Positions 59 to 63,985 of a DNA stretch of 64,000 nucleotides are shown here, piece after piece (the stretch's first letter is position 1; each line of letters begins with the position of its first letter). The translations under genes and the position numbers were made by a program. This stretch comes from Bugula neritina (lineage: Eukaryota; Animalia; Bryozoa), in NCBI GenBank assembly GCA_964035545.1, contig OZ037767.1:18568259-18632258 (forward strand), written 5' to 3'. The notes below the pieces were generated by a model that was given only the letters and a program-made list of their open reading frames with translations, searched no databases and had not been told where the DNA came from.

Positions 59-193
59 AGGAAATCTGTGATGAGAAGTTGGAGATACATACTGTCAGGA
101 TCCACTTGATGAGAGAACACAACTCCCAGTCACATCAGCAAAACATCACATCAATGTATTATTGAGTATCTAAATTACCAAGTATTTACTCAC

Positions 194-3100: not shown

Positions 3101-6100
3101 AATCATTAGCTATATAGGAACGCTGCTTCTAGTAATGTGGGAGAGGTTCCATCAAAGTAAACAAACATAGTGTCAGCGTTATTACTATTTAATATACAGT
3201 AGCTCAGAAAGGAAATATAGGATTACTCCTATCTCTTCTGATGGTGTATATATTGTGAAGGTAATAAATAGTACATTGCAAGCTGATAGTACCAAGTACA
3301 TGCTGATCAATACTACAGAATTTAGGTCTTCAGTCTTTTACAATGTCCTATACTATGAGTGGAGATAAGCAATGATGAATGGAAATGCAGTTAGGACTCC
3401 AGGTACACACAGACACCAGCAAGCACCTATGTGCACCTGACTGTTGATCATGTGGCCTACTATATCTTGACACACTGGAGTGTCCTGTCATTGTCACATG
3501 CTGATAGGAAACTCAACAATGGCAATCACAGAAACTACAGACATGCTGCACCCAGTGCTCATGCAGGTGAAATTCTAGGACAGTTGTTTTGGTAACAATA
3601 CAATAGATAACACTTTTAGGGCAGAGTAAAGTTTGCATGTCAGAAAATGGGCCAGTGTTGAGTCCCAAAGAGTGTAGAGTTGTTTTGCTACTCCAAATAC
3701 TAATATAACTAAAAGATATCCCATTAACTCGCATTTAGTTGTTAGAAATTAAAATTGACAAGGAAAGTAAACCGAAGGTCTGTCAAAGTGAGTATGATGA
3801 CCTACCTTGGTCGCTGCCTTGCCATCCATGCTGACGCTCTTGTAGTAGTGCTTCATCACTTCTGGGTCCAAGTCCGTCATGAGGAGTTCAACAGTCTGGT
3901 CTGGTTTCTCCACACCCTTGTGGGGCTGCGGGGAGGTGGTGTACATGTGCCAGCAGTCCGCATTCACTCTACCAAAACTGTAGGCTATCCCCTCTCCAAA
4001 CACCCCATTCAGCCAGTCAACCTGATAAGGAAACCACACTGAAATCATAAGTTCTGAATCTCACTGCATCAGTATTCTGCTACAAGCAGGAGTCAGTATT
4101 AGAGATGCAGGACAATATAATTTTACTTGAATGAAGTTTTTGATAATTTCTTTTTTATTTACTTTTTTAAAATAATATCTTTCATAATATCGCACATATA
4201 ATTTAAATAAACATAATAGCAATATTATTATAAAACAAACAAAAGACATAAGACTATCGCTACTTCCACCTCTATGCTCTGTGATTTGTCTAAAACTGTC
4301 CCAAACAACACAAGTACAATATTCAAGGCTACAGGCACCATATTCAAGGCTACAGCCACCATATTCAAGGCTACAGGCACCATATCCAAAGCAAACACAG
4401 CACTGAATGCATGAGTAAAGCTTCACTCACCTCTTCAGGAAAGCTGGTATGGGGAGCAATTTGATCACATGGTCTCTCAAAGTTCTTACGACTGAAGAAA
4501 ATATCCTACAAATATGCAGTGTAACAATTCAGCTACAGATAACTACAATGTACTCTTATGACTATCTCTACAGTACATTAAATATGCTGTCAGCAAACTT
4601 TCATAACAATTGGAAGTTGCTCTACCTCAGCAATTACATGTGGACAAAATAGTTAAATTTAATTTCGGCTTTAAACTATTTTGCTTTGTAAAAATAAAGC
4701 ACATGTTCTATACATAAAATCCAATAAACTACCATTTCAACAATCAACTAAAGGTGATGATACTGCTTTACTATATTGACCAGCTCAAACAGTGGAGTTG
4801 CTCAAATATAGAAGTTCATAATCATAACACAAGTTTCTACTGTCAGAACAGTCTGCATCAAATATCTTGTCACCATAACCACTAAGTGATATCTCAGCAT
4901 GTTATGTAACAGGAAATAATAATTAATAACAGGGTTCAAAAGTTAAACAACTTGCCCTATACAATCACATCTAACATATAATATATACATTATGCAACAT
5001 AAAATGGCACACAGCAATATTCTCTTATACTGTATTGCATTATATAACAATGACTTCTAAACACTCCACATCAACATCATATGCTAAATACTTTATGATC
5101 AGACTTACAGCAATGGAGTCAAAGCCACACACATTCTTCACCAGCTGGATGAGAGGTTTGATAGCGTGGAGTAAGGTGGTGGTGCCACAGGTCTTTAGTA
5201 TAAACCTGTCCTTCGACACAAACATGCTGCTTTCGCTGTCAATACAACACAACGCGTAAATGCAGTGCTGAAATACTCACAATTATTACAAGGTGTACTG
5301 GCAGCTCCGAGTGCACCCGCAAACCGCTATCAGGTTGAGACACCAGTTTCAGAGAAAGTCTTATGGAAACAGAGAAAGCGTAGACAAAATATACCTCCTA
5401 TTACAACTTAATTAAAATTAGATTAATGTTACTGAATCAGTGCTACTTAAATACCAAAACTCAACATTACAAAACACAAACCAAGCCTATTTTCTGTGCT
5501 TAAAATAAGTTATCTGAGACCAATGGTAGTTTCCAAACAATGCACAGCAAATCTGTAGAATAACACTAAACACATATTTTCAAGAATTAGCCAACACAAG
5601 TGTCAACAATCTCACCTTAGGACATAAGAGTCCAGGGAGTCACTCTTAGTAACAGATATTATCTCACAGTTCACCAGAGACAGTATGCTTTCCCAGTCAG
5701 CCCTGCAGCAAACGCAAAACTCATCAACTCAAATTTCAGCTGAAAGAGTAATTTCCTTCTTACTTAGTTATTAGTGAATCTGCTAGTAATTCATAATTGT
5801 AGTATGACTATCTAGAGTCTAGACTCTAGGGTATGATATATGTAACTGTTAGAAAAAGTAAGAAAACTTGATTTTTAAAGGCCAACAAAGTAAAAATAGT
5901 TAGGTTTTAGCAGCTAGCCATATTGAACTTAAAACACAATATAAAATATTAATAAATAATAGAGAGTTTGGTGAAGGTTAATAATTAATCATTTAATATA
6001 AATACTTATATAAGAACTAATCGCAAGATCAAGGTGGAGATAATCAATCGGTGAATGTAAACTAATTAATCTAAAGAACTTTGAAAGAGCTAAAAAAGCA

Positions 6101-33874: not shown

Positions 33875-36566
33875 CTAAGTTTCTTGTTTCTTGTTCAGAA
33901 AGTTCTGATTTTCTTCGTCTGGCAGCAGCAACTTGTGCTGACTTTGATCAGACGGAAAGACTATGCTGCCACTGAGATCTTTGGAACTGACATCTGACAT
34001 TTCTGTGTAGACATCTGCCAAACAGTCAGTCATCATGTATATGAGTGTCTTATATACATACCCTACAGTCTACATTATTATGGCTACGTGTGTGTCATTT
34101 TGCTTGCTTTCCATAACAATGCCTTTTCCTACTTGCGTACATACGCACTTACAGTCAGTAATTTTAGCTTTAGCTAGTATATATTTATATACCCAGTATG
34201 TTGTTTGGCACCAAAACCAGCTTGCTTATAAAATAATATGTGGAGTTTGAACTTCAACAGTTGGTCTGTTATGTATATTCATGCGTTAGAGGTGGTGACA
34301 GAGTCTAAACCTAGTCAATAGGTCAGGGAGTAAAAGCTATAAGTAAGCTATTAAAATTTCATTATGCAAAATTTCAACTTTATACTTCTGACTAAAAATA
34401 TATTTTAATAATATATTTATATGAACTCCATTTCAGCGAAATGTATAAATAAACAGTATGATTGCATAGGCATTCTAAATGTATAGATCGAGTTTCCATT
34501 TCCTTTACATATATTATTTAACATACTATATCTTATAGTTCAAAGGGACATTTTTCGTAGTTGTATAGTTATGCATTACATTATATAGTCAAGCTTTTGC
34601 TGCATGTCATAATTAAGAATTAATAACTATTTGCAAACGGAAAATCAACTTGAGTAATAAACATGTCAGAAATTTGTCGTTTACTGCCTTAGAAATTTTC
34701 TGATTTAAATTCGTAGCTTAGGCAAGCAACCTTGTTTTATTTCATAAATCAAATTTTGTAATAAAAGATGCCTAACTTTTCTGTAATCATTGAAAAACTT
34801 CATTTCCAATTGTTCTTTTCTATTTTCTTTATTGGCTGCATACTCACCGCAGCCAATTTAGATTTTCATTTTGATTAAATTTTAAAATAAATATGTTTTT
34901 ACTTACGCATTTCTGTAACTGGGTGTGAATATAGCCATTTCTTATCAACATGCAAATCAGGAACTAAAAATTAAAAATATTGATGTTGGTGAGCCACTCT
35001 TCTAGTTTATTGTATTAACTTTTAAATTTTGGTTAACTCTGTACTACAGTTGCTTTAGGTAGTCTCTATCAAATATTATTATATAACATGATTTTAAAAT
35101 AAAGATGAATACAGCAAGACAAGCTTTTATAATTGCATGACATTTTATAGCTTTAGAAGTACTTGATTTGCTTTTAGTGCCAACCTTATACTAATTTTCA
35201 CCACCAATGAACTGAAACTTCATTGATGGGGGTTATAGTTCAATGCTCACCAAAATATGGTAGGTTTCGGTTATTGCTTTTCTCTGAACTAAAATATTTT
35301 TCTTTTTTTCTGTGCACCAAGCAAACAGATATTATAATAATCAATGTCACAGCCATTATTCCTAAAAGAAAACCTATAATCCATAATGGCTGGAAGAGTG
35401 TGAAGGGTTGAACTTCTAGAGTACCATAAGCTAACTCTACTGTTGTATGTCTTCCAATCAGTTGGGCTGTAGCAGTTGTTGTTGGAGTTGCAAACTCACA
35501 ATCTTCCTCGTAGTATTCTGCAAGAGATGTATAATATTTGAGTTAAAGTAAATTTTCAATTGTTTCCATGCAGTTGCTTTGGTGACTTTGTGGACAACTT
35601 TTTGCAACACTCAAATGCATCGTTACAGCCATTATTTTTGTAAACCTTCATTCAGTTAAAAAGCGCCTGGCACATTCATAGATAGTCTATTAAATAGTTC
35701 CCATATATCTTGGCTCTATCAGCTCAAATAGCTTTTAGCGTAGTGTGCCCAAGTATATTGATTTTATAGAGTCCTTTGAAGATGCACCTCTTGAGTTGCT
35801 TCAAAATAATGGTGCACTTGCATGCCATGATGACAGTTTGTTGAGCTGATATTAGTTGTTTCTAACTTTGATTATAGGCCTACTAATATCTATATTTACT
35901 TTATCATAAGATAATAAAATTCTATGAAAACTATACGGCAATGATATAGATATAGGTTGCAAGTTTTCATCACTTTAACTACAAACCTCCTCATAAAGTT
36001 ACACATTTCCCGCTTGTTAGCTTTTCTCAAGAGTTGCATGGTAAACTAACTCACTTTCATTTTGAGAAATAATCGTTTCCCAGATCGTAGCAATTTAAAT
36101 GAAGTGGTTAGAGCATTAGGTAATGGGTTCAAACTTTTGCAGCAGTATTGATGATGCCCCAAAAGCATTCTACTACAATTGCTCACAGTAACTAAGTTAT
36201 AATTTGCTGTTTTAAAACTCTATAGCACCAATATTTCTCGTGGATGCGTCATAGCAGTTGAGATTTAAACTAAAAGAAAGGTTACATGTTAGAAAGATGT
36301 CTATAACCGAAACACCTACCTCTACAGAACTCCTTACACTTAGCCTCTGATCTGGAGCCAGACTTCACAGAGTTGCAGACACTGCTGCAGCTTCTGTATT
36401 GGAGAAAACCCTCTAGAAAGAAACACCCTCTGCTTGAGAAATAAGTCACAGTTTGGCAATCTTCATAGGTGAGAGTAGAAAAATGACCTTTGCACTGTAG
36501 CAGTGTGCTTTCTGAAAAACTTGCTGCATGAAGAATCAGTACAAAAATAAGATATATTAAAGCCAT
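33875..36566 (-). CDS. Grindelwald/TACI-like TNF receptor superfamily member (236 aa, type I membrane protein)
   Basis: Exons 36566-36320, 35517-35251, 34963-34907, 34014-33875, all joined by phase-1 introns. Signal peptide MALIYLIFVLILHAASFS; single Cys-rich domain ending CSSVCN...CKEFCREYYEEDC; Thr-rich stalk; TM LWIIGFLLGIMAVTLIIIISVCLV followed by HRKK; ~85-aa tail without a death domain. Gene structure is solid; family call is by motif recognition. Confidence 0.78.
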
Positions 36567-36913
36567 GCTGATTATAGACGTAGAACTGCTGCGTAGCTCA
36601 GATTCTCAATAAATGAACTACTATAATATTATTTTACTGATAATGACATGAAGTGAAACTAATGCATTGTGCATGGAAAACCTATGAGTATATTGACGTT
36701 GGCTATCAGCCAAATCAATAGTGTATGGTGTATAGTGTATACATGAACAAACGCACACACCCTAGCGCTCAAGCGCATGTGGGTGTGCTAGACCTTACAC
36801 CGTGACAGCACAAACAAAATGGCACCGCTGTTATGTTTTGTCAACAGGCGTTCACACACTGATGAAAAATACACCACATGACGTTAAGCTGTGACCAATC
36901 ATAATAAGGCTAA

Positions 36914-37191
36914 CCCCCTATTCACACTACCGTAACAGCCATTTTTAATGTGTCCAGACTGAAGTTTTCAAAGTCCGCTATTAGGTACAATCTATGACAC
37001 TTCATTGGACAATTATATCCAATGAATTAAAGCAAAAGTTTTTCTGCCCAATAGGAGTCCGCCGCAACTTATTTGAATCAAGCAGTGCTTGATCCTACCG
37101 TACCGCAACACTGTACAGGAAGCTCAGACATTTGTCAAAATGGCTGATATCTGCTGTTACGGCGTACGATACGGTAAGTGTGAATAGGGGG
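36914..37191. mobile_element. PIF/Harbinger-type MITE nested in another repeat
   Basis: TIRs CCCCCTATTCACACT / AGTGTGAATAGGGGG; TAA TSD; the matching empty site is visible at ~57245-57290. Confidence 0.88.
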
Positions 37192-37770
37192 TAATTCTTG
37201 TCTGCGGTGACTCTATAGCGTTTTGATCATTACTTATTATATTACACATTACCTATTGTCTAAACTTTTGCTCAATCTATTCAAATCATTGCTTGCTGGC
37301 ACAGGACAATTTATCACCATTCACTCATATACTCATTTAGCTACTCACTTAGCCACAGCTTTTTTAAGCCACAGATAGCTTTGTATTCACTATTGCAATT
37401 ACCAATGAACTTTGTGACCACAATATATAGCTGTCAGCTTTTTATAGCTTATAGCCAGAGACCGGAGCTGAGTTGTTTTATGCTTTCATGCCAGTCTGAT
37501 GCTTTTCTCCACTGACTGTGTTATAGCTCTCACTGGTCATTTTTTGTTCTGTGCGTGATACATGTAGATATTTAACCTTTAACTATTACAACCTTATATA
37601 TTTGGTTCTAACTCTCCCCAGGAAGGGTGATAGAGGTATGTTGAACATTGTTATGCAACAATTTTGTAATGTTTTATGTTTTTTTTTCTTGTCATCAATG
37701 TCTTTATTATCAAATTGTATTGTAGTTAAATCATAGCGCAATATAATAATAAAAATATCTGTTTTAATTT

Positions 37771-40712
<2,942 letters not shown>

Positions 40713-41886
40713 GCTGCTTCTAGTAGGTGCTGTAGGAAAGCAAAACACACAATTCAGGTTCAGCGATCAATATTGTGCCACACTGCAGTCTTTTCACAAT
40801 GTAGAAGTTCCTGCTTTGAGTTGGCAATAACTTGAAAACATGAATTTGAAAACAGTTCATATGAATGTTGTATTGTTTAATTTGGATCAATATTATTGTA
40901 AAAAAACCGGTTGTTGTTTATTTTGGATATCCTTTGGCACATATAACTAAAACAGTTGTTGGCTGATCTACAATAAGCTATATTTATGCAGGTCATCCCA
41001 TATACATGTATATCATATAAATACATATAATGTCTATCAACACAGAATTTTATTCTCATAAGCATATAGCAACATACCACAAATTAAATAAAATTGATTG
41101 CAATTTCTTTAGTTTGGTTTATTATCAAAAAGGAAATACTTAGATGAAACTTAGGAAAGAGAACTGAACCAATTTGCAAAGCTTGATATCAAATTTCTAG
41201 ATAAAACTCAAACAGATAAAAAATTTGTATAAACTATTTATATAAGAATCAAATAAAAAAGCTGAAAGTTTACACCCTACAGTTTATTGTTTACATTCTA
41301 TTGAATGCTGGCTTTTACATCATTTGATGACATATTGGCAGCTTGCAAGCATTAACATAAACCTGGGAATGACTATCAATTGACAAAATTGTTAGGAATT
41401 GGAAACCCTCACCTTTTACTTGCTGACTTTTTTGTATCTTGGCAGCACCTTTGTTTGCTATAGCTGACGATCAATTGAACATTTCGTAGGCAGCTGACTT
41501 TAGAGTGTCCAAGCTTTCAAGTGTCGACATTAATTAAAAGCTGCATCAAAGAAAATTCAATTTGCACCCTGGAAAACATAACAGCTTTGTTTCCAAACCT
41601 AGTTATGACAAAGCTGTGTACAATTAGTAGAGCAAGTAGCAATAATATGCAGAAGTGTAGCTGCTCTACTAGCCTGGCTACACTGCAGATGTGAGAGCTG
41701 AGTATGTTTCCATTGATTAATGGAGGTTTATTGTACTTGGCATATTGAATATCTCCACTCAAGTGTAACTTCATTGTGAAAGGCTCAATAAACTTGCTAT
41801 ATCTTTCATATCTTTGGTGTAATTACATATTATGAAATTTTAATATAAGCTTTAGTGAATGAAACTTGAACGCTTATGCCTCGTGG

Positions 41887-43226
<1,340 letters not shown>

Positions 43227-44535
43227 GTTTTACGCAAGCTACACTAGTTCCACTTCACACGTTTAATCTATTCATATAGTTAAACAAAGCTGTTCACAGG
43301 TCAACAGCTGCATCTCTTATGCATTTTGGCTACTTCCACTTTTTTAGATTTAGATAATTAATTTTATTCAAGAAACTTGTAAGTATTTGCTTAAACCAAA
43401 TATGATGTTTAGGCCCTATACATTCTTTATAGCCGTTGAGCAGTGAAGATTGTATAAATTTTGCAATAACTAATAATTGCTATTAAATTGTATAAATTTA
43501 TAATTTGGCTATGGACTGAGAAGTGAATGTTAGCCATTGAGCAGGAAATAGAGACTAGCTATATAAAAGTTGTTAGAAATCACGAAAACACTTTCCTCCC
43601 TGTTGTGTAATTATTCAGTGCATCTGCTTGCAAGCCGGAGGTTTGTAGTTCGGATCCAGTAGGGGCAATTATTTTACAGAAGTAGATGTTAGTTAACAAA
43701 CCCTAGTAAATAGTGACACAAGCTTTTTTAAAAATAATGATGGCAATCAACTCGCTTTCATCATAAGTATGGCCATATTTTTATCTTTGTGATTTATTAA
43801 ATATATTTATACCACAAGCTTACAAAAGCTAAAAGCTTTTATAAGAGTCTTCCACCTAACAACCTTACAGATTTCCCTTTGAGCAGTCTCCTGTTTATTT
43901 TGCAAACTTTTACTTTATCTAATTTACTTATGCTTGAAGCTTTTAAAGTTGTTTGTTTGCAAATGCAATACGTTGTATATTGTATAGTATAGTAAAAGAA
44001 TGAAGCCCTTAGAAAATAGCTACAAAATGTTATGCTCAAATGTGCAAACAAGAATAAATTGATCATAATAAAATGTAATTTAGTTGACATAATATAATGT
44101 TAATTATTATAATACAACTTATCAAGTACAAATATGTATGATGCAATATAATTTAGTGCCTTATATTATAAAATAGTGTTTGTAAGTTAGTTGATTGTAC
44201 TCAGCTGCCATGTAATATAACATACTATGAATCAATATTATAGGATATAGCATAGTGGAATGTAAAGCAATAAATAAAATAGTAAAATGATGAAATATGA
44301 GATGATACATGATACCATAGTGTATTATTATATAACACATGTGATATAAAATAATATATTATATTCAAAAGATAACTAAGGGTAACATAATATAGTATAT
44401 AGCGTGGTAAAATAAATAAAATTTAATGCACTAAAATACAATTCAAATTAATACTAAAAGAAATTATTTAGTGCACATTGCAATATCAGTAAACAACTAA
44501 TATGAAATATTAATATGTGAAATGATGGTACATGG

Positions 44536-44851
44536 CAGGTTGTCCAACAGGTGACCCCAGGGCCGGATGTGGCCCCCAGCCTATATTTTTAAGTGACCCT
44601 AAAAGACATAAAACTGAAATTATTTTACAAAGTATAAACGAATTGGAGTAAAAAAACCACCTTTTAAATGTCCTAATTCTACACATGCTATACAAATCAT
44701 GCAACCTGCATTAGCTGTTGGGACTTTACTGTGTTATGATTCATATACAAATTTGGAATTAGCACAAGCTAAAGTAATCAATGTGGCCTTTGCCACAACT
44801 ATTTCCCTTCAGTGCATATGGCTCTCGCTCTGAAAAAGTCAAACACTCCTA
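44536..44851. mobile_element. Degenerate hAT MITE
   Basis: caggttgtccaac...ggccggatgtggccccc left end and gaaaaagtcaaacactcct right end resemble 8753-8991. Confidence 0.6.
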
Positions 44852-45108
44852 GTACAGGCTACATTGATTTAGTTTGAATATGAGGATGTCTGGCAATTTA
44901 AACTTTTACCATTGAATTGATGCCAATTTGCATCAAACCTTTGTACTTACATATAGGCAAAGTATGTTAGAAAAGTCAATTCATTTCTAATCTAATACAA
45001 TAACTGAAAATACAATAATGATTAAAGCTTAGCTGTGCAGCAGCTGCCTGTGATAGCCTGCAGTTCAAAAACTTGGCATGTTACCAAGTAACATCTTTGA
45101 AGGCTAGA

Positions 45109-45118
45109 GGAGAATCCC
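45109..45118 (+). promoter_or_regulatory. NF-kB-like site upstream of TNF copy 1
   Basis: GGAGAATCCC; reverse complement GGGATTCTCC fits GGGRNWYYCC; lies in a block conserved with copy 2. Confidence 0.5.
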
Positions 45119-45605
45119 TTAAAGTGGGTTGAGTTCCACTTCATAAAACCTAGTCTTAGGCAGACAGTTGAAGTTCCTGGTCGCTAAAACACAATTTGCA
45201 AGAGTTAGAAGCTGCTAATAAGTCACATAGCTTTTGTTGCGACTAGATAACGAAATAGAGAGACTTAGGTTTTGCAGGCTCAGTCTGTTGAAAGTAAACC
45301 AGCATGGGGGACTGCAAGCCACTGCTAAAACATGATCTGAATGTCCATGTGCAAGAGAAAAACATAAAGGAAGAAGATGAACCTAACAGGATGTCTCATT
45401 GGGGTTCTGAGAGTCGGTTGCTAGTTGCTATGGCAACTGTAGTAATAATTCTGCTGTTTACTACTGTCTAGTGATGACAGTGAACATAATCTGGAATGAC
45501 GTTAATGAGCTGAAGACCGAGCTTGCAGACCTGAAACGGGAATGTAGTGATAGTTTGGCAAAGGTACTGGTCTTATAGATAGTATACAAATATATATGTA
45601 ATGTA

Positions 45606-45992
<387 letters not shown>

Positions 45993-46202
45993 CCTTTCCC
46001 CTTTCTTACTAAATATAGTAAAATTTGAAAGATAGCATAAAATGTGGTTAGCAGAATTCTGCATCTGATGGTAAAAAAGTGAACTTTAAGAGGAAATACG
46101 AAACACAGTTTTTAGGAAAACTTGTTATTTTTCAAGTTAATTCTCAATTATATGTTTCATCTAGAATATAAGTTAAATTGTTATATGTATGACACTGACT
46201 AA

Positions 46203-46585
46203 GCATAGGGCCACACAAATGAGACGTTGTGGGTGGGATTTTCATGCGTCTAACATGCTGAGCGAGAAGTGCGGCAAACTCGTGCGTGTTTGATCTAATT
46301 GGCTTATTATCACTTTTTTTATTATCACTTTTTTACTTTTAATTTTTAGCAAACTGAATTAAAACAGTTTCATATAGTTTGCATTTCCAATTCTATAATA
46401 TCTAAAGTCATTTTGCCGATGACAAAGTTTTAAAAACAAACGTCTGTAGGCAAGCAGTAAAGTTTATCGCTAACATCATTAGCTAATAAATTTCTGCACT
46501 CGCAACACAAGCATTGTGTTTGGCAGGTCTAAATGGGTTTTCTTGCACGTCACTCTCGTGTAAACTGTGTCGTGTGGCCCTAGGC
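46203..46585. mobile_element. PIF/Harbinger-type MITE (same TIR as 30532-30874)
   Basis: gcatagggccacac / gtgtggccctaggc; TAA TSD; present only in the copy 1 intron. Confidence 0.82.
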
Positions 46586-47550
46586 TAACTCATATAGAAG
46601 GAGTGTGTATGTTTGTGCTAGAGCTAACTAGGGAGAGACAATGGTGATCTGTGAGTGCAAGGCCTGTTAGTATTACATTATACTATAGGCTATAAGGCTA
46701 GTGAGTGACACTTCCATGCAGTGACATATACCAGTAGGCTCATATCAGAAAAAAGATGTATGTATAGCCAAAACTCTGACCCTTATGTTACTTTAAAAGT
46801 TCTCAAGCTATGTTGACAACTTGGTTTGAGGTGAGTTTCATTGCCCCCCAAAAAATTCTCACTGTTATTGAAAAGAAGGTTATTATAAGCAGACTAAAAA
46901 GATAATACAATGCAATAATATTTAGTTATGTTTTTAGTCACAACCAAAGGAGACTGCTAAAGTGAAAAGACAATTGAGCACTGAAACCGATGACTACAGC
47001 AGACTCGCTCTATATGGTAATAAATTATTTAATACTTTACTCAAACATACGGATTTATGTAATATTTCTAGCCTGCCCTGTTCTCCAATTCTTTAATTTT
47101 TAATCTCGTAATCTCCAATTGATTCAGCAAAAGTATTTATACCATAACCATGTATAGATTTACAAATTATAGAAAAAACATATCTCTTTTTTTAAAATTA
47201 AACTAAAATATTACGCTCAACTCTGTAGCATATGATGGTCACACATAAAGATTTCAAATTGCAACATTGTGCATGGTTTATTGCGTTTCTTGTAAAGCTA
47301 AAAGAGTATTAAGGAAGCTACATGACATTAACAGAAGAATGTTTCTACATATATATTGCATTTTCATTTTTTATGTGTGATAAAGTCAGCGTCAAAGTAT
47401 TAACAGTTATGTATATCTTTTCAGGCATTCCATTCTATGACATTGCTTTGATCCGTGGTGACCCTTTGACCTTAGATGAACCAATATGTAAGTATAATCA
47501 GCAGTGTGTCTCAAACTAAAACATGATAGCAGTGTGTGGAGTTACCTTAG

Positions 47551-48965
47551 TGTACGATGTAACTAGTGATGTGACTAGTGTATAATGTAACTAGTGTATG
47601 ATGTGACTAGTGTATAGTGTGACTAGTGTATGGTGTGACTAGTGTATAGTGTGACTAGTGTATAGTGTGACTAGTGTATGATGTGACTAGTGTATGGTGT
47701 AACTAGTATATGGTGTGACTAGTATATGATGTGACTAGTGTATGGTGTGACTATTGTATAGTGTGACTAGTGTATAGTGTGACTAGTGTATGGTGTGACT
47801 AGTGTATGGTGTGACTAGTGTATAGTGTGACTAGTATATAGTGTGACTAGTGTATGGAGTGACTAGTGTATGGTGTGACTAGTGTATGGAGTGACTAGTG
47901 TAAGGAGTGACTAGTGTATGGAGTGACTAGTGTATGATGTGACTAGTGTATGGTGTGACTAGTGTATAGTGTGACTAGTGTATGATGTGACTAGTGTATG
48001 ATGTGACTAGTATATAGTGTGACTAGTATATAGTGTGACTAGTGTATAGTGTGACTAGTGTATGGTGTGACTAGTGTATAGTGTGACTAGTGTATAGTAT
48101 GACTAGTGTATGATGTGACTAGTGTATAGTGTGACTAGTGTATGGTGTGACTAGTGTATGGAGTGACTAGTGTATGGAGTGACTAGTGTATGATGTGACT
48201 AGTGTATGGTGGGACTAGTATATGGTGTGACTAGTGTATGGTGTGACTAGTGTATAGTGTGACTAGTATATAGTGTGACTAGTATATAGTGTGACTAGTG
48301 TATAGTGTGACTAGTGTATGGTGTGACTAGTGTATAGTGTGACTAGTGTATGATGTGACTAGTATATGATGTGACTAGTGTATAGTGTGACTAGTGTATA
48401 GTGCGACTAGTGTATGGTGTGACTAGTGTATAGTGCGACTAGTGTATGATGAGACTAGTGTATAGTGTGACTAGTGTATGATGTAACTAGTGTATGATGT
48501 GACTAGTATATAGTGTGACTAGTGTATAGTGTGACTAGTGTATAGTGTGACTAGTATATGGCATGACCAGTGTAGAGTGTGACTAGTGTATGATGTGACT
48601 AGTGTAGAGTGTGACTAGTGTATAGTGCGACTAGTGTATGGTGTGACTAGTGTATAGTGCGACTAGTGTATGGTGTGACTAGTGTATAGTGTAACTAGTG
48701 TATGATGTGACTAGTGTATGATGTGACTAGTGTATAGTGCGACTAGTGTATAGTGTGACTAGTGTATGGTGTGACTAGTGTATAGTGTGACTAGTGTATG
48801 GTGTGACCAGTGTAGAGTGTGACTAGTGTATGATGTGACTAGTATATGATGTGACTAGTATATGATGTGACTAGTATATGATGTGACTAGTGTATGATGT
48901 GACTAGTTTATAGTGTGACTAGTATATGGTGTGACTAGTGTATCATGTAACTTGTGTGACTATTG
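47551..48965. repeat. 16-bp minisatellite (gtgactagtgtatRRt)n, ~88 units, TNF copy 1 intron 3
   Basis: Direct tandem array. Confidence 0.97.
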
Positions 48966-51900
48966 TATGGTGGGATTGCTTGGTGTATAGAAATTTTCTA
49001 TGGGTCACAGAGCAATGTATGATACCTGCAAGTCCAATATTTTACTACTAAATAGTTTCAAAATTACTCAAAGTCTATAAAAGCATTGAACAAAATATGA
49101 CGAAACTAATTTTGTACTGTTATTTTCATTTTCCAATTCTAATTGCATCTCAAACTGAAACACATTATTTGAGTTTATTGCCATAATATAGTATGCCGAG
49201 GATCTAAAATTGTTAGCATTTCATAATGATTTCATACAGCACACTTCATTTTGTTATTTTTCAGTTTCAGAATACAAATTTTATTATATTATTTTCAAAA
49301 AAGTCAATGTAAGTGTGTTGTACTGTACTGTTCAACTCGATCTAGAAGCAATGGCACAGATAATTGAATGATTTGCAAAGAACCATAGACAATATCTTTC
49401 TCTTATAAAATAGCTTGCTTGTTATCAGCTATCACCTAAGCAGTATTTCTGACTTATGATAAAGATGAAGAGAGAAAATTAAAATAATAATGTAACTCCT
49501 TTGAAGCCACAAGCCTTGTTTGACTAATATACACAGATCTGTATATGATCTTACAATGTATCTTATTAGATGACAGAAGAAAAAAGTTTAAGAACACCAC
49601 AACTTCCATCGAGGCATGCACCAGTCGATATATGAAAATGAAAAACAGCTACAATGACCTACTATGTAAAAGGAAAATGGCTGTCGCTGAACAAGTGACA
49701 AAAATGAAGTTCACACAAAGTATGGCTACTAGTTCTCTGTTATGCATGCTTATTACAAAAGTAAGCCAAGTCTTGCAAATTTCATCTAATTTGCTAAAAA
49801 GTTATTATTACTTTATGTCATTGTATTTATAGAAAATTGCGGTTTGCATTTATAGAGGGAGTACTGCAGCGCCCCCTTCGTAGTTCACTAAGCTACTGGT
49901 TAGAAACCTCAATTCGTGACATAATAGCATACCAGATTTAACTCGAGGATCCTTTAAATTCAGCCATCTTTTCCCTATACACACACATATATATATATTA
50001 TAAGCATGCATACACATGCTATTAAATGACTTCCAGCCATTTAATCTAAATTTGTCAATTTATACACATTTTTTATTAGACTTTTAGTTGGATTACTATC
50101 AAAACAACACATTTCACGCCTATCAGTTATACAAGAATTATGAGCTTCCCCAATAATTCCACATTACTTACTCAAAAGTTAAAATTGACTTGAAAAGTTC
50201 ATATGTCACTGATTTTCAATGGTGATTTAGCTAGAAAACGAGGTTCCAAGCCCATTTCAGTGAATTCTATGAAACTTTGTGATAACAAGATCTGTGAACT
50301 ACAGCACACTGTATTTATAATTCCTACTGAAAGTGCTTTCAAAACTTTAGCCAGATTATCCACATTTTTGAAAGTTGCATGATCTTATGACAACTGATTA
50401 CAGGATCAGAAGATCTTGCAATCTATCCCTATTTCACCAAGGCAGACTGGATGAATGAAGAAACAGCTGAAGAGAAGTATAGGCTCCATCGCTCTGGAAA
50501 GATATCAGTTGAGTCCCGTGGAATCTACATTGTGCATGGCAGTGTAAGCATTTAGAATAACTAATACAACAATTCAGTATTTTGAGAGAATAGCCATAGT
50601 CTGTAGAGTAGGGATAACAGCTGTATAACAGCAACCGCCCACTCTTTCTTCTAAAAAAGCAATTCCAACTTGTTGTTATAGATGTGTGTGAGAGATCAAA
50701 ATATAAGGTTATTCCCCTGTCACATTATAAGTCTTAACTTGAGTTGTAGCAAAAGTAAAAAAAATCTACATCACATAAGAAACTGCAATTACAAATGTAC
50801 ACAATTAAACCATAGATTATCCTTATCAGTCATTCAATAATTTGACTTATTGTATTATTAAACACATGATTTGATTATATAAAAATATAATATCTGGTAA
50901 TTTATTAGGGAGTTCAACTGGTAATTTTTCTAGCAAAATTTGCAATCTGACGAAAGTGAAAATCTCTATTTTAAAACAACTTAAACATGCCTGAGACCAC
51001 TTAAACATGCCTGGGACCACTTAAACATATACTTGGGTATACCTATAAGTATAATTGAGTGTACTTAAATATACTTAAGAGTATATTTAAACGTAGCAAT
51101 GAGCATAATTGGTTTAATTTCAGTGAAAAAAATCGCTTTTTCAGCTTTTATAAAAAGTCTTTATAGAAAGCAAAAAATAGTAGAGAATGATTGTCTTTAA
51201 ATTTTTTTACACAGCTATTTTGTAAGATCTGAAATATTTTAAATCATTGTTTGTAAATCATTTCCCTTATTTTTGTGTAATATATAAAGTTTTAACAAAG
51301 CATCAATGCATCTAAATATTTTACATTTTGGTTTTAATTTTCTTTACAAATCTCTGATTTTACTCATCTACATGCTTTTAGAGTTCTCATTTAAATTTTT
51401 CTTTTCATTTCATTACGTTTTATAACTTTTCAGATTCATTTCAGCGTAAATGACAGATCAACTTTCCCATACTACAGCATTTACATATCAGACTCTGAAG
51501 GGTTTAATGAACGCCTTATCACTAAATGCGTAGTCACAACAATGAACGATAACACGGATGAAGATATTTTCCCTTGTCAAGCTTGGCAGGTGAGTCTTTA
51601 TTCTACACAGTATACTAAATGTACTGAATCTTTAAACTTAGTCAATTCTATATAGCTCTGAATAAACCATATGCAGTTTAGTGTGAGCCTGTCTAAAGCG
51701 GGAGCACGTTGTGTAGTTTTTTTCTAACCATTTCTCACCAAGCAATAACTTGATGCCTCTGTAAACTTTCCTTGTGAAACAGAAAAATTGATGATTTAAA
51801 ATATGGTTTTTCTTGCATTTAAAAGATTTCTTTTGTTAATTTATTTAAAAAAAGTTTTAGTCTTTTAGTTTCTCAAATTTTTATACTTTTAAATCGATGT

Positions 51901-53628
51901 CTGCTGTTATACTTATTCTTTGTGCAAACTTCAAGCTTTCTATAGAGCTTAAATATTCCTATCATCTCTACAGATGTATTGATCAATTGATATATAGCTT
52001 ATCAACAGATGGGCAGAAGTTGGTTATAAATTGATTGTTAATGTAAAGGAAAAGGCCTTCAGTTTTTTCGATATACTCCTGCCCCTGGGCTAAATCAATA
52101 TTGGGAATTATTGTTTAATAAAATATTAATAATAAAAATAGTTTACAATAAACTACAGGATACGTAATATTTTTATTGAAACAATAAAATGTTACTGCAG
52201 AGCTATTTTTAAAGTATGAATATTATCTGACTTTTTAGATGGTGCAACTTGAAGCTGGTGATTTGATTTACATGACTATCAGCAATCATGTTTGGTTCAG
52301 AATAGAGAAGGAGACCTTTCACCTAGCACTAATCAAACTCAATGATGGACTCAATTAGACTAAACAGTTTTCATTTTGACAAAAAAGTAACTAAAAGCTT
52401 TATTACGAATAGCAATAACTTTATTGGTGTTTAAGAGTTTTGCATATATTATGATCCACCAAAAATACGTACAAAAAACAAAGTAAATTATATTTTTTTT
52501 TTCATCTTATGCATTAATATTGCTACTTTAGGTTATAAAAGAAATTATCTAGAGTAACGGATAGCATGAAAATTCTTATGCAACTCACTGTAAATAGTAT
52601 TAATTATATAATATGTACTAATCTTTTTATATTGAAATTAAAATAGTAATATAATTAGTAATATTAAATGTTTTACGTACAGACTTTCATAGGTCAGCAA
52701 TTAATTCTTATATATAACATCACTAAGTCAAAAGGCTTATGTTATTACAGCTGCCATTTGAGTTTTTAAAGCAGGCTATAATTTGCATGAAGATAATTCC
52801 CATGTTGTAGTTATTCAAAATAAATAGCCTAATGCAAAATGTACCGGCAGAATGCAAAAAACTGCAGTAACCTCATTGTTTATAAACTAACGATTTGATT
52901 TAACTTGTAGAGCTAATAAAAAGATGCTAGACAGAAATTATGCTTTTTAATTGTAAATTCAAAATTGATTACTTTCTGCAGGTATTATACATAACATATA
53001 TCATAACTATTTTTGGCTGGTTTCACTTTTTTAGATTTAGAGAAATATAATGCTGTTTAGGAAAATCTCCTTTATAAGTATTATATAAGTAAACTTGTTA
53101 AAATCATGTATAACGTTTATTTATTCTTTATAGCTGTTTAGCAGAGACAATTTTGTAAATTCTGAAACTATTGATTGAAATTAAACATAATCTAGATTCC
53201 AGTTATAAACTGGGAAGTGAAAGCTAGCTACAATATAACGAAAGAAGAAGTAAAAAATATGATTAAGAACAGTGATGGTAGTTAACTCACTTACATCTTG
53301 CAATTATATGTTGTCTTTTTCTTACCTTTTTTTACAACACATCTTATAAAAGCAAAATGCATTTAGTTATCTTTTCTTCCAGCTAATAACCTTAAATATT
53401 TTTGCATGCCTTCTGTTTATTTTGCAAACTTGTACCTCACCCATAATTGACTTACGACTGAAGCTTCAAGGCCTGGCCACACACTTGTGAGAATTACACA
53501 AAATCATCTATTTGACACAAAAACAAAGGGTACGACCACCTGAGGCGACGGACGAAAAAACGCAATTGACCATAAGCACATTTAATTGGTTAATATAATT
53601 TTTGCAACAGTTATAATATCAAATCTAC

Positions 53629-53667
<39 letters not shown>

Positions 53668-54438
53668 TAATATAGTATATTAAAAAAAAGAAGTCACTAC
53701 AAAAATTGTTGCAAAACCCTATAACACTCAAATGTGGATATGATTATTATAATTAAATGCCACATATAATATGATTTATCTTACTGTAATATAATAACAA
53801 CTATTAGAATTATAATAAGCAAACTTATATATACTATTATAAGCAAACAAAAAACAATATAATGCAATTCATTGTATTATATACTTTATAATATGTATCA
53901 TTATGAACTGTTAATATATTAAAACAGAGGAATGTTAAAGAAGCTTAACTACAGCATTAAATTTGGTAAAGCAAGGCAGTGGTATAAATCATCCGCTATT
54001 AAGTTGAGAGCCTTTCAACAGTCCTATAGAAAGTTGGTTATGCTCAACCATACTATGTATTTTTTGATGTCATATATGAGAGGGCCCCATTTCATATCTG
54101 TAACTTGTTTACAAAAAAAAACAACTTTTAAAAGCTTGCCTACCAGTTTGCTCCTAGTGCTTGGGTTTCAAAGTGTGTTCTGTATCACCTATCTATGTAA
54201 TACTCAACAGTTACAATGATAGATCACATTGAGTGTTTCTGTCATTTGCTTAAGCCAATTTATTTTTATTTTATTTATGCTTTTACTGTTAATCTTTAAT
54301 AAATAATATTTTAGGTCACAAATTAGTTAACGCAGCTGATATTATACAGTAAATTGCACAGCTTTGCAACAGCTGCCTGTGATAGCCTGCAGTTCAAATA
54401 ACTTGGCATGTCTCCAAGCAACATGTTTGAAGGCTAGA

Positions 54439-54448
54439 GGAAAATCCC
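54439..54448 (+). promoter_or_regulatory. NF-kB-like site upstream of TNF copy 2
   Basis: GGAAAATCCC; reverse complement GGGATTTTCC; same position as 45109. Confidence 0.55.
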
Positions 54449-54645
54449 TTAAAGTGGGTTGAGTTCTACTAGATAAAAATTTAGCCTTAGGCACAAATTG
54501 AAGTTCCAGGTTAGTATAATTTTAACATAAAACACAATTTGCAAGAGGTAGAAGCTGCAATAAGTCACACGACTTTTGTTGAAATTAGATAAGTAAGTAG
54601 AGACACTTTAGCTTTACAGGTTCAGTCTGTTATAGGTTAATTAGC

Positions 54646-59812
<5,167 letters not shown>

Positions 59813-62800
59813 ACTGAAAGTTTATTTCTCGGACAAAAAAGTAACTAAAATGTTATTATACACAGCAATAACTTAACGGTGTTTGAGAGTTTTGGATATA
59901 AACCGTATACAAAACAAAATTAATTATGATATTTTGTTTTCATCTTATATGCATGAATGCTGCTACTTTACATTATATTATGAATAACATAGCTAAGATG
60001 CAAAATGTTAGATAACTGACTGTAAATATCCTGAATTATAATTTATTTTGTATTATTCTTTTATATTTTTCTCTGCTGTGTCTTGATCGGCTGGCAAGTA
60101 TTCTTCTTCCATATGTTGAAATTAAAATAATAATGTAGTTAACATTAAAAAGTTTTTTTATGAAAAATTGTTATTGCAGAAATTGCATTGATTGCTCACC
60201 ATGCAGTATTGTATCGTGTAAGAACTGAAGTGTCACAACTTACAAAAGTCATTGCCGTTAGTAAACCTGTTGAAAATTGTTTCCTGAAAAGCAACAATTT
60301 GACATTTCACTAAAAAAAATGTGAATAGAAACCAGATGTTATCTTGAGCTCATAAATGGTTAAAGCATTTCATAGCTCTCTCAGAAAACTGACAAAAATG
60401 TTGAATAGGGAAATCACAGAAACATCAGTCAGCTGATTCTAGATTATGTCATGTCAACTTGTTTGATGGCTTTGAGAAATGTGGACTCTTCCTGTTAATT
60501 GCGAGATATAGTGGCAGATAGATTATGTCTATTATAGGTAGAACATGTAATAGGGTTGGCACAAGACTGGAAATATAAATAATGTAATTTAAAGCAAAAC
60601 GATTACCTTTTCTGCAATAAAGCACTTCAAATTGGAAAATGCCTATGTATATCTGACTACCAGTGTTGCTTAACCATGGACATACAGAAATAAAAAACAT
60701 TGAAGACTTTATTTTTTGCACTGAAAATGTTGAATATCATGGATGTGATTACTTTATAATGTACATTGGACACAATTCACAGCTCAATAAATTGACAACC
60801 AAGCAGCAACACATTTAAAAGTAGCTAGTTGCAACTTGCCAAACTTACAGACTTTTGCCATCTATAAATTAAAATGTCTGATTTTAATTTGATTTCCGAA
60901 GATGTGCTTACTTTTAGCAGTAACATGTTTAAACTGGCAGTAAATTATTTATTCTTTCATTTCAAGAAAAATTTCAAGTTTATATGAGTTGAAAGGTTAT
61001 TAAGAAGAAAGTCAGCTTTGTGCTGGACACTCATTCATTAACTCATATACTACAATGGCTGAGAAATACAGCTTTATGATCTTTATAAAGTCTATTATAA
61101 TAGCTTTTATTACACGTGATTTTGAAAGGTGTGCTGCCACAGCTGCTGCTTACAACCGAAATCAGACAAAAATGCACTTTCTAAGTGCTCTCTTATATAA
61201 ATTTAATTAAGTTTTTAAAAGGCAGACACATGTTGAAGAGATTTTATTTATCTAAAGTAATCACTCAAAGATGTTCGGTTATCTATCAAGTTTGTCCAAG
61301 GCTTATTTTGTTGGGAAGTTTCCAAGTCACTTGAGTTAGGTAGAATGAATCAAGTAATGTGTGCAAAACATTTCTGATACATACGATGTTTTTATATAGA
61401 CATCTTCATCAATACAATACACCAGTTCAATGAGAATTTTATAAACTGCTTTTAAAATCTTGTTGAGACATTCTAATTAGATTATAGGCCACTGAAAAAG
61501 GGTATATATTATACAGCAGAAACAGAAGCAATCATAGCATATGTTATTTTAGCAATGGCCTTATGGGGCACGGCTGCAGATTGCTATGGTAACCACAACA
61601 CTTACAGTTTTCTCGTACTCCTGCAATCTGTTTAATGATAATGATTACAGGGCTTTAGGAGAATTAACATTAATGAAATGTTAATTATGTAACAAATATC
61701 TAAACACACAAGACAAGTATGGGCAATTATTTATATAATATAGATTTAATATTCTAGTGTCAAGACATGTAAATTATGTTTCAGATTTTTATATCAGAGT
61801 TTAGAATAAATGCCTACTTAATGGGCATAAAGTATTGAGGTAAACTATTATTCACACATAGACTAATTGTGTAATTGTGAAATCAATGCAGCCAAGCATG
61901 TATTTCTAAAAAATAAGTACACAACTCCAAATAGGTTGAGCTACAAATAAATGTAATTATTCTTATAGCAGTACACACTCAATGTGTTTGTTTGAAATAT
62001 AATTGATTTACCAACTTTTGAAACATACAAATTTGATTTCAATTTCTTTCGTTCTATTAACAAATAAACTTGCAATGAGCCATAACACAAAAATATATTA
62101 TAAGTTGAACTCTCTATTCTGAAAATATCTTTTGATGGCTGCCGTTTTCAATCGGGCTAAACTGTAAAGACTGCACCTCTCACAGTGATGGCAGCAAGAT
62201 TTAAGATATTTTAAAATAACATAATATGACCTATATTTATCATCTGAACTAGCCCATGTACACTAGGCATGTGCTGCATAACCACCGGGTCACAAGCTGT
62301 TCCTCTGAAGTATACCGGCACCATAAACTTCAGTTATATCTTCAAATATTGTTTTAGAATAATATAAATAAATTTGAATTGCATAACAATTGGGGGCCAA
62401 ATAAAAAAGTCGCACAGGCGTATCAACTCTTATCAAATTATTATAAACAAAATACATTTATATACAATTTGGTTAAATTAGTAGAAAATGCTAAATTTAC
62501 TATGGCAGTAAACAAAACATCTGTTGATGCATAACATAAAAGCATCTTATTCAGTTTATTATCTTTTATTTTGCCCATCAGTTTTATATAGTTTTTATTT
62601 TACTTTAGTTTTATTCTGATCTTCCTGTGATTGAAAAATAGAACCTATATCTGACAATCAGTATAACCATGTTTGACCTAAAATTGAAATTCAAGTTCTC
62701 ATCCGACACTTATCAACCGATCAACTAAAGAGTTAAAGGCACTAAAATAGTACACATGAGTTATTAAAACCAGTTCAATATGATATTTCAATTCTAAAAC

Positions 62801-63718
62801 AAATCTAATATATTATATTAGTTATTAGTCCTAATGAGATTTCAACATCAAATTGTATTTTTGCTACAAATAAACTTGTTATAAATATCATGCACTGCAA
62901 CAACAAACATATTGCCATCTAAATAATACAATTAAACATTTCATTTGATTATAGATGCAATTCACATTTAATGCGATTTCTCTTAAATGAAAAATGTTGT
63001 TACAGCTCGTGTTAAAAACTTAATATTTGCAATAGAGTGTACAATTTAAAAATGTAAAAAATAAAACATGTTCAAGAGCAGCTGCTTTTCTGAGGTGAAA
63101 TAAGATGCTTGTGTATAGTCAGCATATTATAATTACACCATTTGAAGCTTTTCTTCATTTAGGGAGTTTTCTTTTCTTTCTCGCAAGTTGATCTCTAAAC
63201 AAATATTCAGATAATCTTAGCAAATTTCATTAGTAAGTTGTAATTTGTATTTGTAACTTTATGCTGATGGATAAAAAAATAATTTTGTTCAAAAGATGAT
63301 GCCTATTTTTGCCATTTGTATGCATTTATTACCCCTCATCTTTGTATATAACTATGTTGCTGCAGCTGCTTAACTTTAACTGAAAATTACCTACACAGAA
63401 TTTAGTGTTTTAGCGGTCCATATTAAAACATGGTGGATATAAAACATTATAATCAGACATCTCCAGATTAAAGTGATAAACTGTTTTTGCAGTATATATT
63501 ATTATAGCCAAAACTACATTAATACCTAGAGCTTTTCAAACATTATAAAAATTATATGAAGGAGCATACAACTGATGTTGAGCAAATCTTTTAAAGTTAC
63601 ACATGTGAAAGTTTTTTGGAAAGTTAGCATGAAATGCACAAGACAGTGCATTAATTAAACAAACACCTAAACTCATTCAATTATTTTAAAATTAACCTAA
63701 ATGTTTTTCCTTACTTAC

Positions 63719-63985
63719 CATGATTGCCACAAAACATGCGGCTTGTTTTGTTAAATTTCCAAGCAGTCAGGATTGACATCATTATAATAAGTACAAGAAG
63801 ACAAGCTGAAACCGCAATTGGCATCATAAAGAGATTCAATTTCTTCTTGTTAAAATTGTCTGTGTGAAGATTTAAATTTTTGCTTTGCATTGAAGCCACA
63901 TGGTCAATGTTGGAGGAGGTGACTGTTGTTCTGGGTAATGAAGATGGGGTGTCCTCCACACCCTCACAATTCAGTTGAACGTATT
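63719..63985 (-). CDS. Internal stalk + TM exon of a probable second Grindelwald-like receptor (partial)
   Basis: ctag|AA TAC ... CAT G|gtaagt; 267 nt, phase 1-1, identical in length and phase to exon 35517-35251. Begins (x)YVQLNCEG vs (E)YYEEDCEF; Ser/Thr stalk; TM LFMMPIAVSACLLVLIIMMSILTAW. First exon is outside the window; downstream exons unresolved. Confidence 0.65.

Follow-up and report, generated by a model that had tools for sequence, protein, structure and literature searches.

In human, the ligand genes BAFF and APRIL and the receptor genes BCMA and TACI belonging to the tumor necrosis factor (TNF) families lie on different chromosomes, and TNFSF18 and TNFRSF18 are 169 Mb apart. Here we describe an array in the bryozoan Bugula neritina in which genes for predicted TNF-type ligands are interleaved with genes for receptors with a single cysteine-rich domain (CRD). 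Its left end lies in the window, the 64,000-nucleotide stretch of chromosome 3 (C3:18,568,259-18,632,258) that was analysed. Human ligand-receptor gene pairs show no excess proximity over chance, and close neighbors such as MST1 and MST1R, with the ligand gene 0.2 Mb from the receptor gene, are single pairs (PMC1309615), unlike the multigene array found here. Tandem clusters of TNFSF genes have been reported in the oyster, amphioxus, and the vertebrate MHC paralogons (PMC7674686), but those are described as clusters of ligands, whereas the Bugula ligand genes are interleaved with receptor genes at 3 to 14 kb.

The closest described receptors are BCMA (TNFRSF17), TACI (TNFRSF13B, whose CRD2 is the relevant domain), and Grindelwald, which carries the signature CxxCxxxC (bioRxiv 10.1101/2024.07.27.603686). 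Expansions of grnd paralogs are known in lophotrochozoans, with 12 in one annelid; bryozoans and genomic linkage were outside the scope of both studies (PMC8024323; bioRxiv 10.1101/2024.07.27.603686). We found no published interleaved TNF/TNFR array and no account of bryozoan TNF genes in the literature searched, the coverage of which was incomplete.

Results

The array

Gene models were built from splice sites and open frames together with homology, and the genome searched comprised 216.0 Mb in 321 pieces. The array spans ∼225 kb of C3 (18.604-18.827 Mb), with receptor (R) and ligand (L) genes in the order R1-GNAT-L1-L2-R2-R3-R4-R5-R6-L3-R7-R8-L4-R9. R1 and GNAT are on the minus strand, L1 and L2 on the plus strand, R2 through L4 on the minus strand, and R9 on the plus strand, giving four alternations between the two families. 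An earlier note on the window had described a compact cluster of two tandem type II TNF-type genes on the plus strand flanked by receptor genes on the minus strand. The arrangement holds, with GT-AG sites and open frames in all five genes of the window, and the order and spacing of the array bear out the tight physical linkage of ligand and receptor; the cluster is not compact, since the array continues for ∼195 kb further.

Genome-wide exon searches with the R1-type CRD, which give a lower bound, identified at least 18 receptor genes, 9 of them in the array, and the corresponding searches for ligand genes found 10, with 4 in the array. L4, R9, and the C7, C9, and C4 loci are known from coordinates and identity only, and L4 has a TGA within its exon-5 match. 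A profile search of the genome also returned classical TNFR_c6 matches (Table 1), two of which form a pair on C7 lying ∼0.40 Mb from the C7 cluster of six ligand genes. This is a second case of ligand-receptor proximity, and both ligand clusters are therefore near TNFR-type genes.

The receptors

R1 encodes a protein with a signal peptide, an ectodomain with 8 Cys residues (25, 37, 48, 60, 64, 77, 81, and 89), a Thr-rich stalk, a transmembrane segment at ∼132-150, and a tail of ∼85 residues without a death domain, in agreement with the single Cys-rich domain that had been proposed for the complete receptor. R2 had been taken as incomplete, but its CRD and signal exons were found just beyond the window. 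The common exon structure proposed for the two flanking type I genes is seen in their transmembrane exons, both of 267 nucleotides and phase 1/1. R2 lies tail to tail with L2, the L2 stop being 3.3 kb from the stop of the simplest R2 model. The R1 and R2 models and the Watersipora RefSeq homologues are all single-pass membrane proteins with a Cys-rich ectodomain, and one array receptor is nearly identical to KAF6023842 of B. neritina. In the cytoplasmic part, R1 has a weak PVTE motif, which we take to be TRAF-like, and the R8 tail exon carries 6-residue PAQT-type repeats (L013, C3:18,755,132-18,756,067), of which R7 has a shorter version. The annotated copy of R5 matches DUF4501 (PF14946) over residues 102-213 at an E value of 1.6e-4, below the cut-off, and this match may be compositional.

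A word search with the receptor domain left its identity unsettled, such searches being insensitive. A large profile search with the CRD returned 60 proteins, all the named ones from bryozoans (Watersipora subatra and B. neritina) and the remainder metagenome or Logan fragments. None of 56 CRD members gave a Pfam match to TNFR_c6, TACI-CRD2, or BCMA. An AlphaFold2 (AF2) model built from an exon alone was poor (pLDDT 52.7, no structural matches) and was set aside. The ectodomain of the Watersipora homologue XP_067946950, modeled from the 56 aligned members, reached a pLDDT of 93 and shows a core of a β-hairpin and a helix-loop-helix, extended at the N terminus by a strand and helices and at the C terminus by a helix and a strand. 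The fold class of the CRD is assigned on this predicted structure.

Only 6 of 48,161 PDB representatives matched this model with a Z-score of 2 or more, and four of these six are single-CRD TNF receptors, namely, BCMA (twice), Grindelwald, and TACI, at Z-scores of 2.1 to 2.8. In a second structural comparison, all four rows were BCMA or TACI (Z 2.2-2.8), and the best ESM Atlas match of the CRD model was a molluscan TACI-CRD2/BCMA cluster (TM-score 0.49). Matches to hairpinin and luffin were dismissed, as they reflect the CxxxC pattern alone.

The core superposes on BCMA and TACI CRD2 with a root mean square deviation (rmsd) of 2.2 to 2.5 Å over 35 to 39 residues, about 2.2 to 2.4 Å for the two BCMA chains of the first comparison, and the receptors share with BCMA and TACI the lack of a death domain. 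They differ in being type I proteins with a signal peptide, 8 Cys, and added N- and C-terminal elements and in having no DxL hairpin motif in the alignment of 56 members. The earlier note had called the receptors Grindelwald-like. This is right for the overall fold, a single type I CRD with 8 Cys, a β-hairpin, and a C2 helix-loop-helix, but BCMA and TACI superpose better than Grindelwald (rmsd 4.1 Å over 44 residues, Z 2.2), the domain is longer, and CxxCxxxC is replaced by YxxCxxxC, with Tyr at the position of the first Cys in at least 90% of the 56 members. These receptors fall outside the Grindelwald subfamily. Given the missing signature and the extra terminal elements, the model identifies them as single-CRD TNFR-type proteins of a new subtype, with a BCMA/TACI-like core in an extended 8-Cys scaffold, which most likely work like BCMA, TACI, and Grindelwald.

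The ligands

The ligands were searched exon by exon, and exons were joined by coordinate only for checks of frame, hydropathy, and motifs. PF00229 gave nothing real over the whole genome and no match in the Bugula ligand exons, and ESM Atlas feature searches with single ligand exons were blank. We considered and rejected a C1q-domain identity, as PF00386 matches other loci in the genome and none at the ligand loci. Six metagenome contigs carry homologous ligand genes with matching exons, and in two of these the exon-5 homologues have PF00229 as their sole match (E 0.012-0.013; 16 bits against a cut-off of 23). This match covers the expected positions, 3-37.

The ligands have type II topology, with an N-terminal transmembrane segment, a stalk, and no signal peptide. 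L2 (transmembrane segment at 41-59) has a predicted coiled-coil stalk, a furin-like site, KVKR, at 96, and a TNF-like domain encoded by exons 5 to 7. L1 and L2 have identical phasing across their seven exons, and the transmembrane exon of L3 is similar to that of L2. A G-x-Y motif and a Cys pair on strands E and F followed by L-x-x-G-D are present in register, a combination of both found in 0 of 200,000 shuffles; we take G-x-Y and L-x-x-G-D to be TNF patterns. Both Cys residues are invariant in nine ligand homologues. An E/F-strand disulfide is present in Eiger, BAFF, APRIL, and TWEAK (PMC8024323), and the combination of this Cys pair with a furin-like site resembles the BAFF/APRIL/EDA group. 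Taken with the weak PF00229 matches of the homologues, topology, cleavage site, and motifs agree with the TNF-type type II ligands of the earlier note, and these proteins very probably have a TNF fold of a divergent type.

Exon 1 of L1 is 4 nucleotides shorter in the assembly than that of L2, which results in stops at codons 56-58. A 973-nucleotide contig from read run X1 has 4 more bases after 45464, which leave the L1 frame intact, and one other difference; its depth of 15.4 is about half depth. Because of this intact contig and of purifying selection on L1 exons 5 to 7 (ratio of nonsynonymous to synonymous divergence, dN/dS, 0.16), L1 is probably a live gene with either a heterozygous null allele or an assembly error. 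The tract of near identity between L1 and L2 (Table 1) is a recent gene conversion, with a dS of 0 compared to 0.35 to 0.56 elsewhere. Exon 4 of the ligands (49570-49665 and 57918-58013) has 96 nucleotides in phase 1/1, encodes an additional Cys immediately ahead of the TNF-like domain, and could be skipped in frame; a 150-nucleotide model of this exon was dropped owing to an in-frame stop in L2. A minisatellite in L1 intron 3 is repeated, in shorter form, in L2 intron 3.

Array growth and selection

The duplicated L1/L2 unit (offset 7.4-9.3 kb, 70-87% DNA identity) spans the ligand gene alone, with no receptor DNA, and L1 and L2 (dS ∼0.46) are far younger than R1 and R2, which are 38% identical with saturated dS. 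The pairs in the window were therefore not duplicated together, contrary to the proposal that cognate pairs co-duplicate. R3/R4 and R7/R8 are receptor-only duplications. Gene order and strand agree between the segments R6-L3 and R7/R8-L4, and their divergence is similar (R6/R7 89% identical, L3/L4 exon 6 84%), so that a mixed block, R6 and L3 giving rise to R7/R8 and L4, is possible from these comparisons; DNA similarity between R6 and R7 ends short of L3. L1 and L2 are only 43 to 52% identical to L3 and L4, and two old ligand lineages therefore share the array.

Copies in SRR4020080 and GCA_010799875.2 have 76 to 86% DNA identity around these genes, a divergence for which we dropped their treatment as alleles in favor of sister lineages and which is consistent with the known cryptic species of B. 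neritina. The selection tests comprise few comparisons, made between these sister lineages. The R1 CRD differs from the sister-lineage copy at 1 of 63 residues, at a locus with 76% DNA identity (dN 0.007, dS 0.31, dN/dS 0.02), and the R5 CRD differs at 5 of 58 residues (dN/dS 0.34). Over paralog pairs, dN/dS is 0.14 to 0.34. These ratios indicate purifying selection.

In Watersipora, OY755166.1 carries seven receptor genes across 741 kb, and OY755162.1 carries two. The 154 kb (21%) sampled from the 741-kb array, in a genome much larger than that of Bugula, gave no match to ligand exon profiles, and no neighbor genes shared with the Bugula stretch were found at the sampled Watersipora loci. Orthology between Bugula and Watersipora is not assignable because the CRD tree is mostly unresolved.

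Table 1. Coordinates of the genes and related loci (positions in the window unless a sequence or chromosome is named)
Feature	Position	Strand	Description
R1	36566-33875	-	4 exons, 236 residues
R1 exon 1	36320-36566	-	Signal peptide and 7 of 8 CRD Cys; profile matches at 18 genome loci, fold from homologue
R1 exon 2	35251-35517	-	267 nucleotides, phase 1/1; 8th Cys, Thr-rich stalk, transmembrane helix, basic stop-transfer
R1 exon 3	34907-34963	-	Cytoplasmic; weak TRAF-like PVTE motif
R1 exon 4	33875-34014	-	Cytoplasmic tail through the stop codon; lacks a death domain
GNAT	37771-40712	-	233 residues; 4 coding exons: 40712-40692, 40482-40282, 38812-38628, 38065-37771
L1	45304-52358	+	Predicted TNF-type ligand gene; 7 exons: 45304-45563, 46938-47016, 47425-47487, 49570-49665, 50404-50543, 51434-51589, 52239-52358
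L1-L2 tract	45465-45764 (partner 54811-55110)	+	∼300 nucleotides, 99% identical; stalk part of exon 1 and adjoining CT repeat
L2	54646-59812	+	Intact predicted TNF-type ligand gene, 301 residues; 7 exons: 54646-54909, 55612-55690, 56050-56112, 57918-58013, 58297-58424, 58881-59036, 59693-59812
R2 cytoplasmic exon, probable	63133-63194	-	Simplest model, 188 residues; tail uncertain
R2 stalk and transmembrane exon	63719-63985	-	267 nucleotides, phase 1/1, 8th Cys; length and phase as in R1
R2 CRD exon, signal exon	L001:2376-2560, L001:3796-3848		0.4-1.8 kb past the window end
Receptors outside the array	C3:25.09-25.11 (3), C3:31.18, C4:18.59, C7:7.09 (2), C9:6.62 Mb (2)		
Remaining six ligands	C7:1.846-1.917 Mb		
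Classical TNFR_c6 matches	C7:1.412, C7:1.443, C5:7.33 Mb		Profile search of the genome

Neighboring genes and other features

The GNAT gene product weakly resembles an insect-type arylalkylamine N-acetyltransferase (Acetyltransf, E 0.035-0.048; 4fd5, AANAT2, E 0.16). It is single copy within the array and its closest paralogs are 4 Mb away, which gives it the look of a bystander, and this is what it likely is.

Between R3 and R4 lie a non-long-terminal-repeat (non-LTR)-like open reading frame (ORF) of 1048 residues (L001:9759-L002:2902) and an LTR-retrotransposon-like element (L002:3718-L003:2422) with a 1372-residue ORF and 266-nucleotide repeats 7.3 kb apart that are 98% identical. Between R5 and R6 is a 394-residue ORF (C3:18,681,530-18,682,711) whose Cys-containing start is followed by Gly/Leu/Asn/Ser repeats, where an older assembly annotates a 298-residue gene. 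Elsewhere in the window, exons at 173-5276 on the minus strand resemble, by eye, S-adenosylmethionine decarboxylase, and a 1.3-kb TG microsatellite and 16-nucleotide minisatellites occupy 41887-43222, 47439-48960, and 39040-39590.

Discussion

The locus is probably an old, locally expanding array of TNF ligand and TNF receptor genes that are ordinary parts of TNF signaling. A gene for a ligand and one for a single-CRD receptor would have become neighbors long ago, and successive local duplications, in most cases of a single gene (L1/L2, R3/R4, and R7/R8) and possibly in one case of a mixed block (R6 and L3 giving R7/R8 and L4), would have interleaved both families. The type II ligands would trimerise and may be shed at KVKR or stay membrane bound, with three receptor CRDs docking at the interfaces between ligand subunits via the β-hairpin and helix-loop-helix, as in BCMA, TACI, and Grindelwald. 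Their short tails without a death domain could recruit TRAFs, for which the weak PVTE of R1 and the PAQT-type repeats of R8 are candidates, and the output would probably be JNK-type stress or immune signaling, as for Grindelwald. Binding between members of the array we consider slightly favored over its absence, and linkage may help shared regulation.

Several points weigh against this account. Half of the receptors and 6 of the 10 ligands lie outside the array, and classical TNFR_c6 receptors are present and could be the true partners of the ligands. The Z-scores of the CRD model are low (2.1-2.8), a Foldseek search with this model gave nothing significant, and no Bugula CRD or ligand exon has a Pfam or PDB sequence match. 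Low Z-scores are to be expected for targets of 36 to 48 residues, and the set of matches to the model is specific.

A further-reaching explanation, which we regard as unlikely though worth stating, is that the array is a selected and co-inherited module in which cognate pairs stay together for the sake of co-regulation or dosage balance, TNF-TNFR linkage being old and general in the lineage. The four alternations between families, the persistence of both ligand sublineages in the array, the likeness of R6-L3 to R7/R8-L4 in order, strand, and divergence, and the closeness of the C7 ligand cluster to TNFR_c6 matches would all fit, but L1/L2 duplicated alone, the R6/R7 similarity ends before L3, the sampled part of the Watersipora receptor array has no ligand exon, and in human the members of ligand-receptor pairs do not lie nearer to each other than expected by chance (PMC1309615). 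It is in the same tentative sense that TNF ligands of bryozoans might be kept in physical linkage with their own class of receptor, forming co-regulated units in which array position predicts the binding partner; L1 to L4 on chromosome 3 would then be matched with single-CRD receptors and, just as tentatively, the six C7 ligands with classical TNFRs.

It is improbable that the two families are accidental neighbors, with the ligands signaling via classical multi-CRD TNFRs and the region's tendency to duplicate alone accounting for the interleaving. Such TNFRs do exist in the genome, the CRD carries added elements and is missing the Grindelwald signature, and the probability of ∼0.001 to 0.013 (about 0.01) for one of two ligand loci falling at random within 10 to 100 kb of one of six receptor loci is post hoc, the pattern having been spotted first; yet the CRD has the fold of receptors that bind TNF, and TNFR-type genes lie near both ligand clusters. 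An allorecognition locus with polymorphic ligand-receptor haplotypes, suggested by the earlier note and evoked by the colonial habit, the tight linkage, the changes in the R5 CRD, and the null/intact difference at L1, is very unlikely in view of the near-invariance of the R1 CRD, which in these few comparisons argues against variability of that type, of the dN/dS of 0.16 in the ligand TNF-like domain, and of run X1, which shows just one substitution across 2.3 kb at L1.

Descriptions of TNF ligand genes and TNF receptor genes usually place them in clusters of their own, and an arrangement that interleaves both is unusual in animals. It adds an undescribed single-CRD receptor subtype, which Pfam misses and which RefSeq and GenBank label "uncharacterized." With 4 ligand and 9 receptor genes alternating, it permits a direct test of whether neighbors are cognate partners and of co-diversification of the two families. 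Should ligands and receptors prove to be linked as units, the array would offer a natural test of selection on ligand-receptor linkage and might preserve a trace of an old TNF-TNFR linkage.

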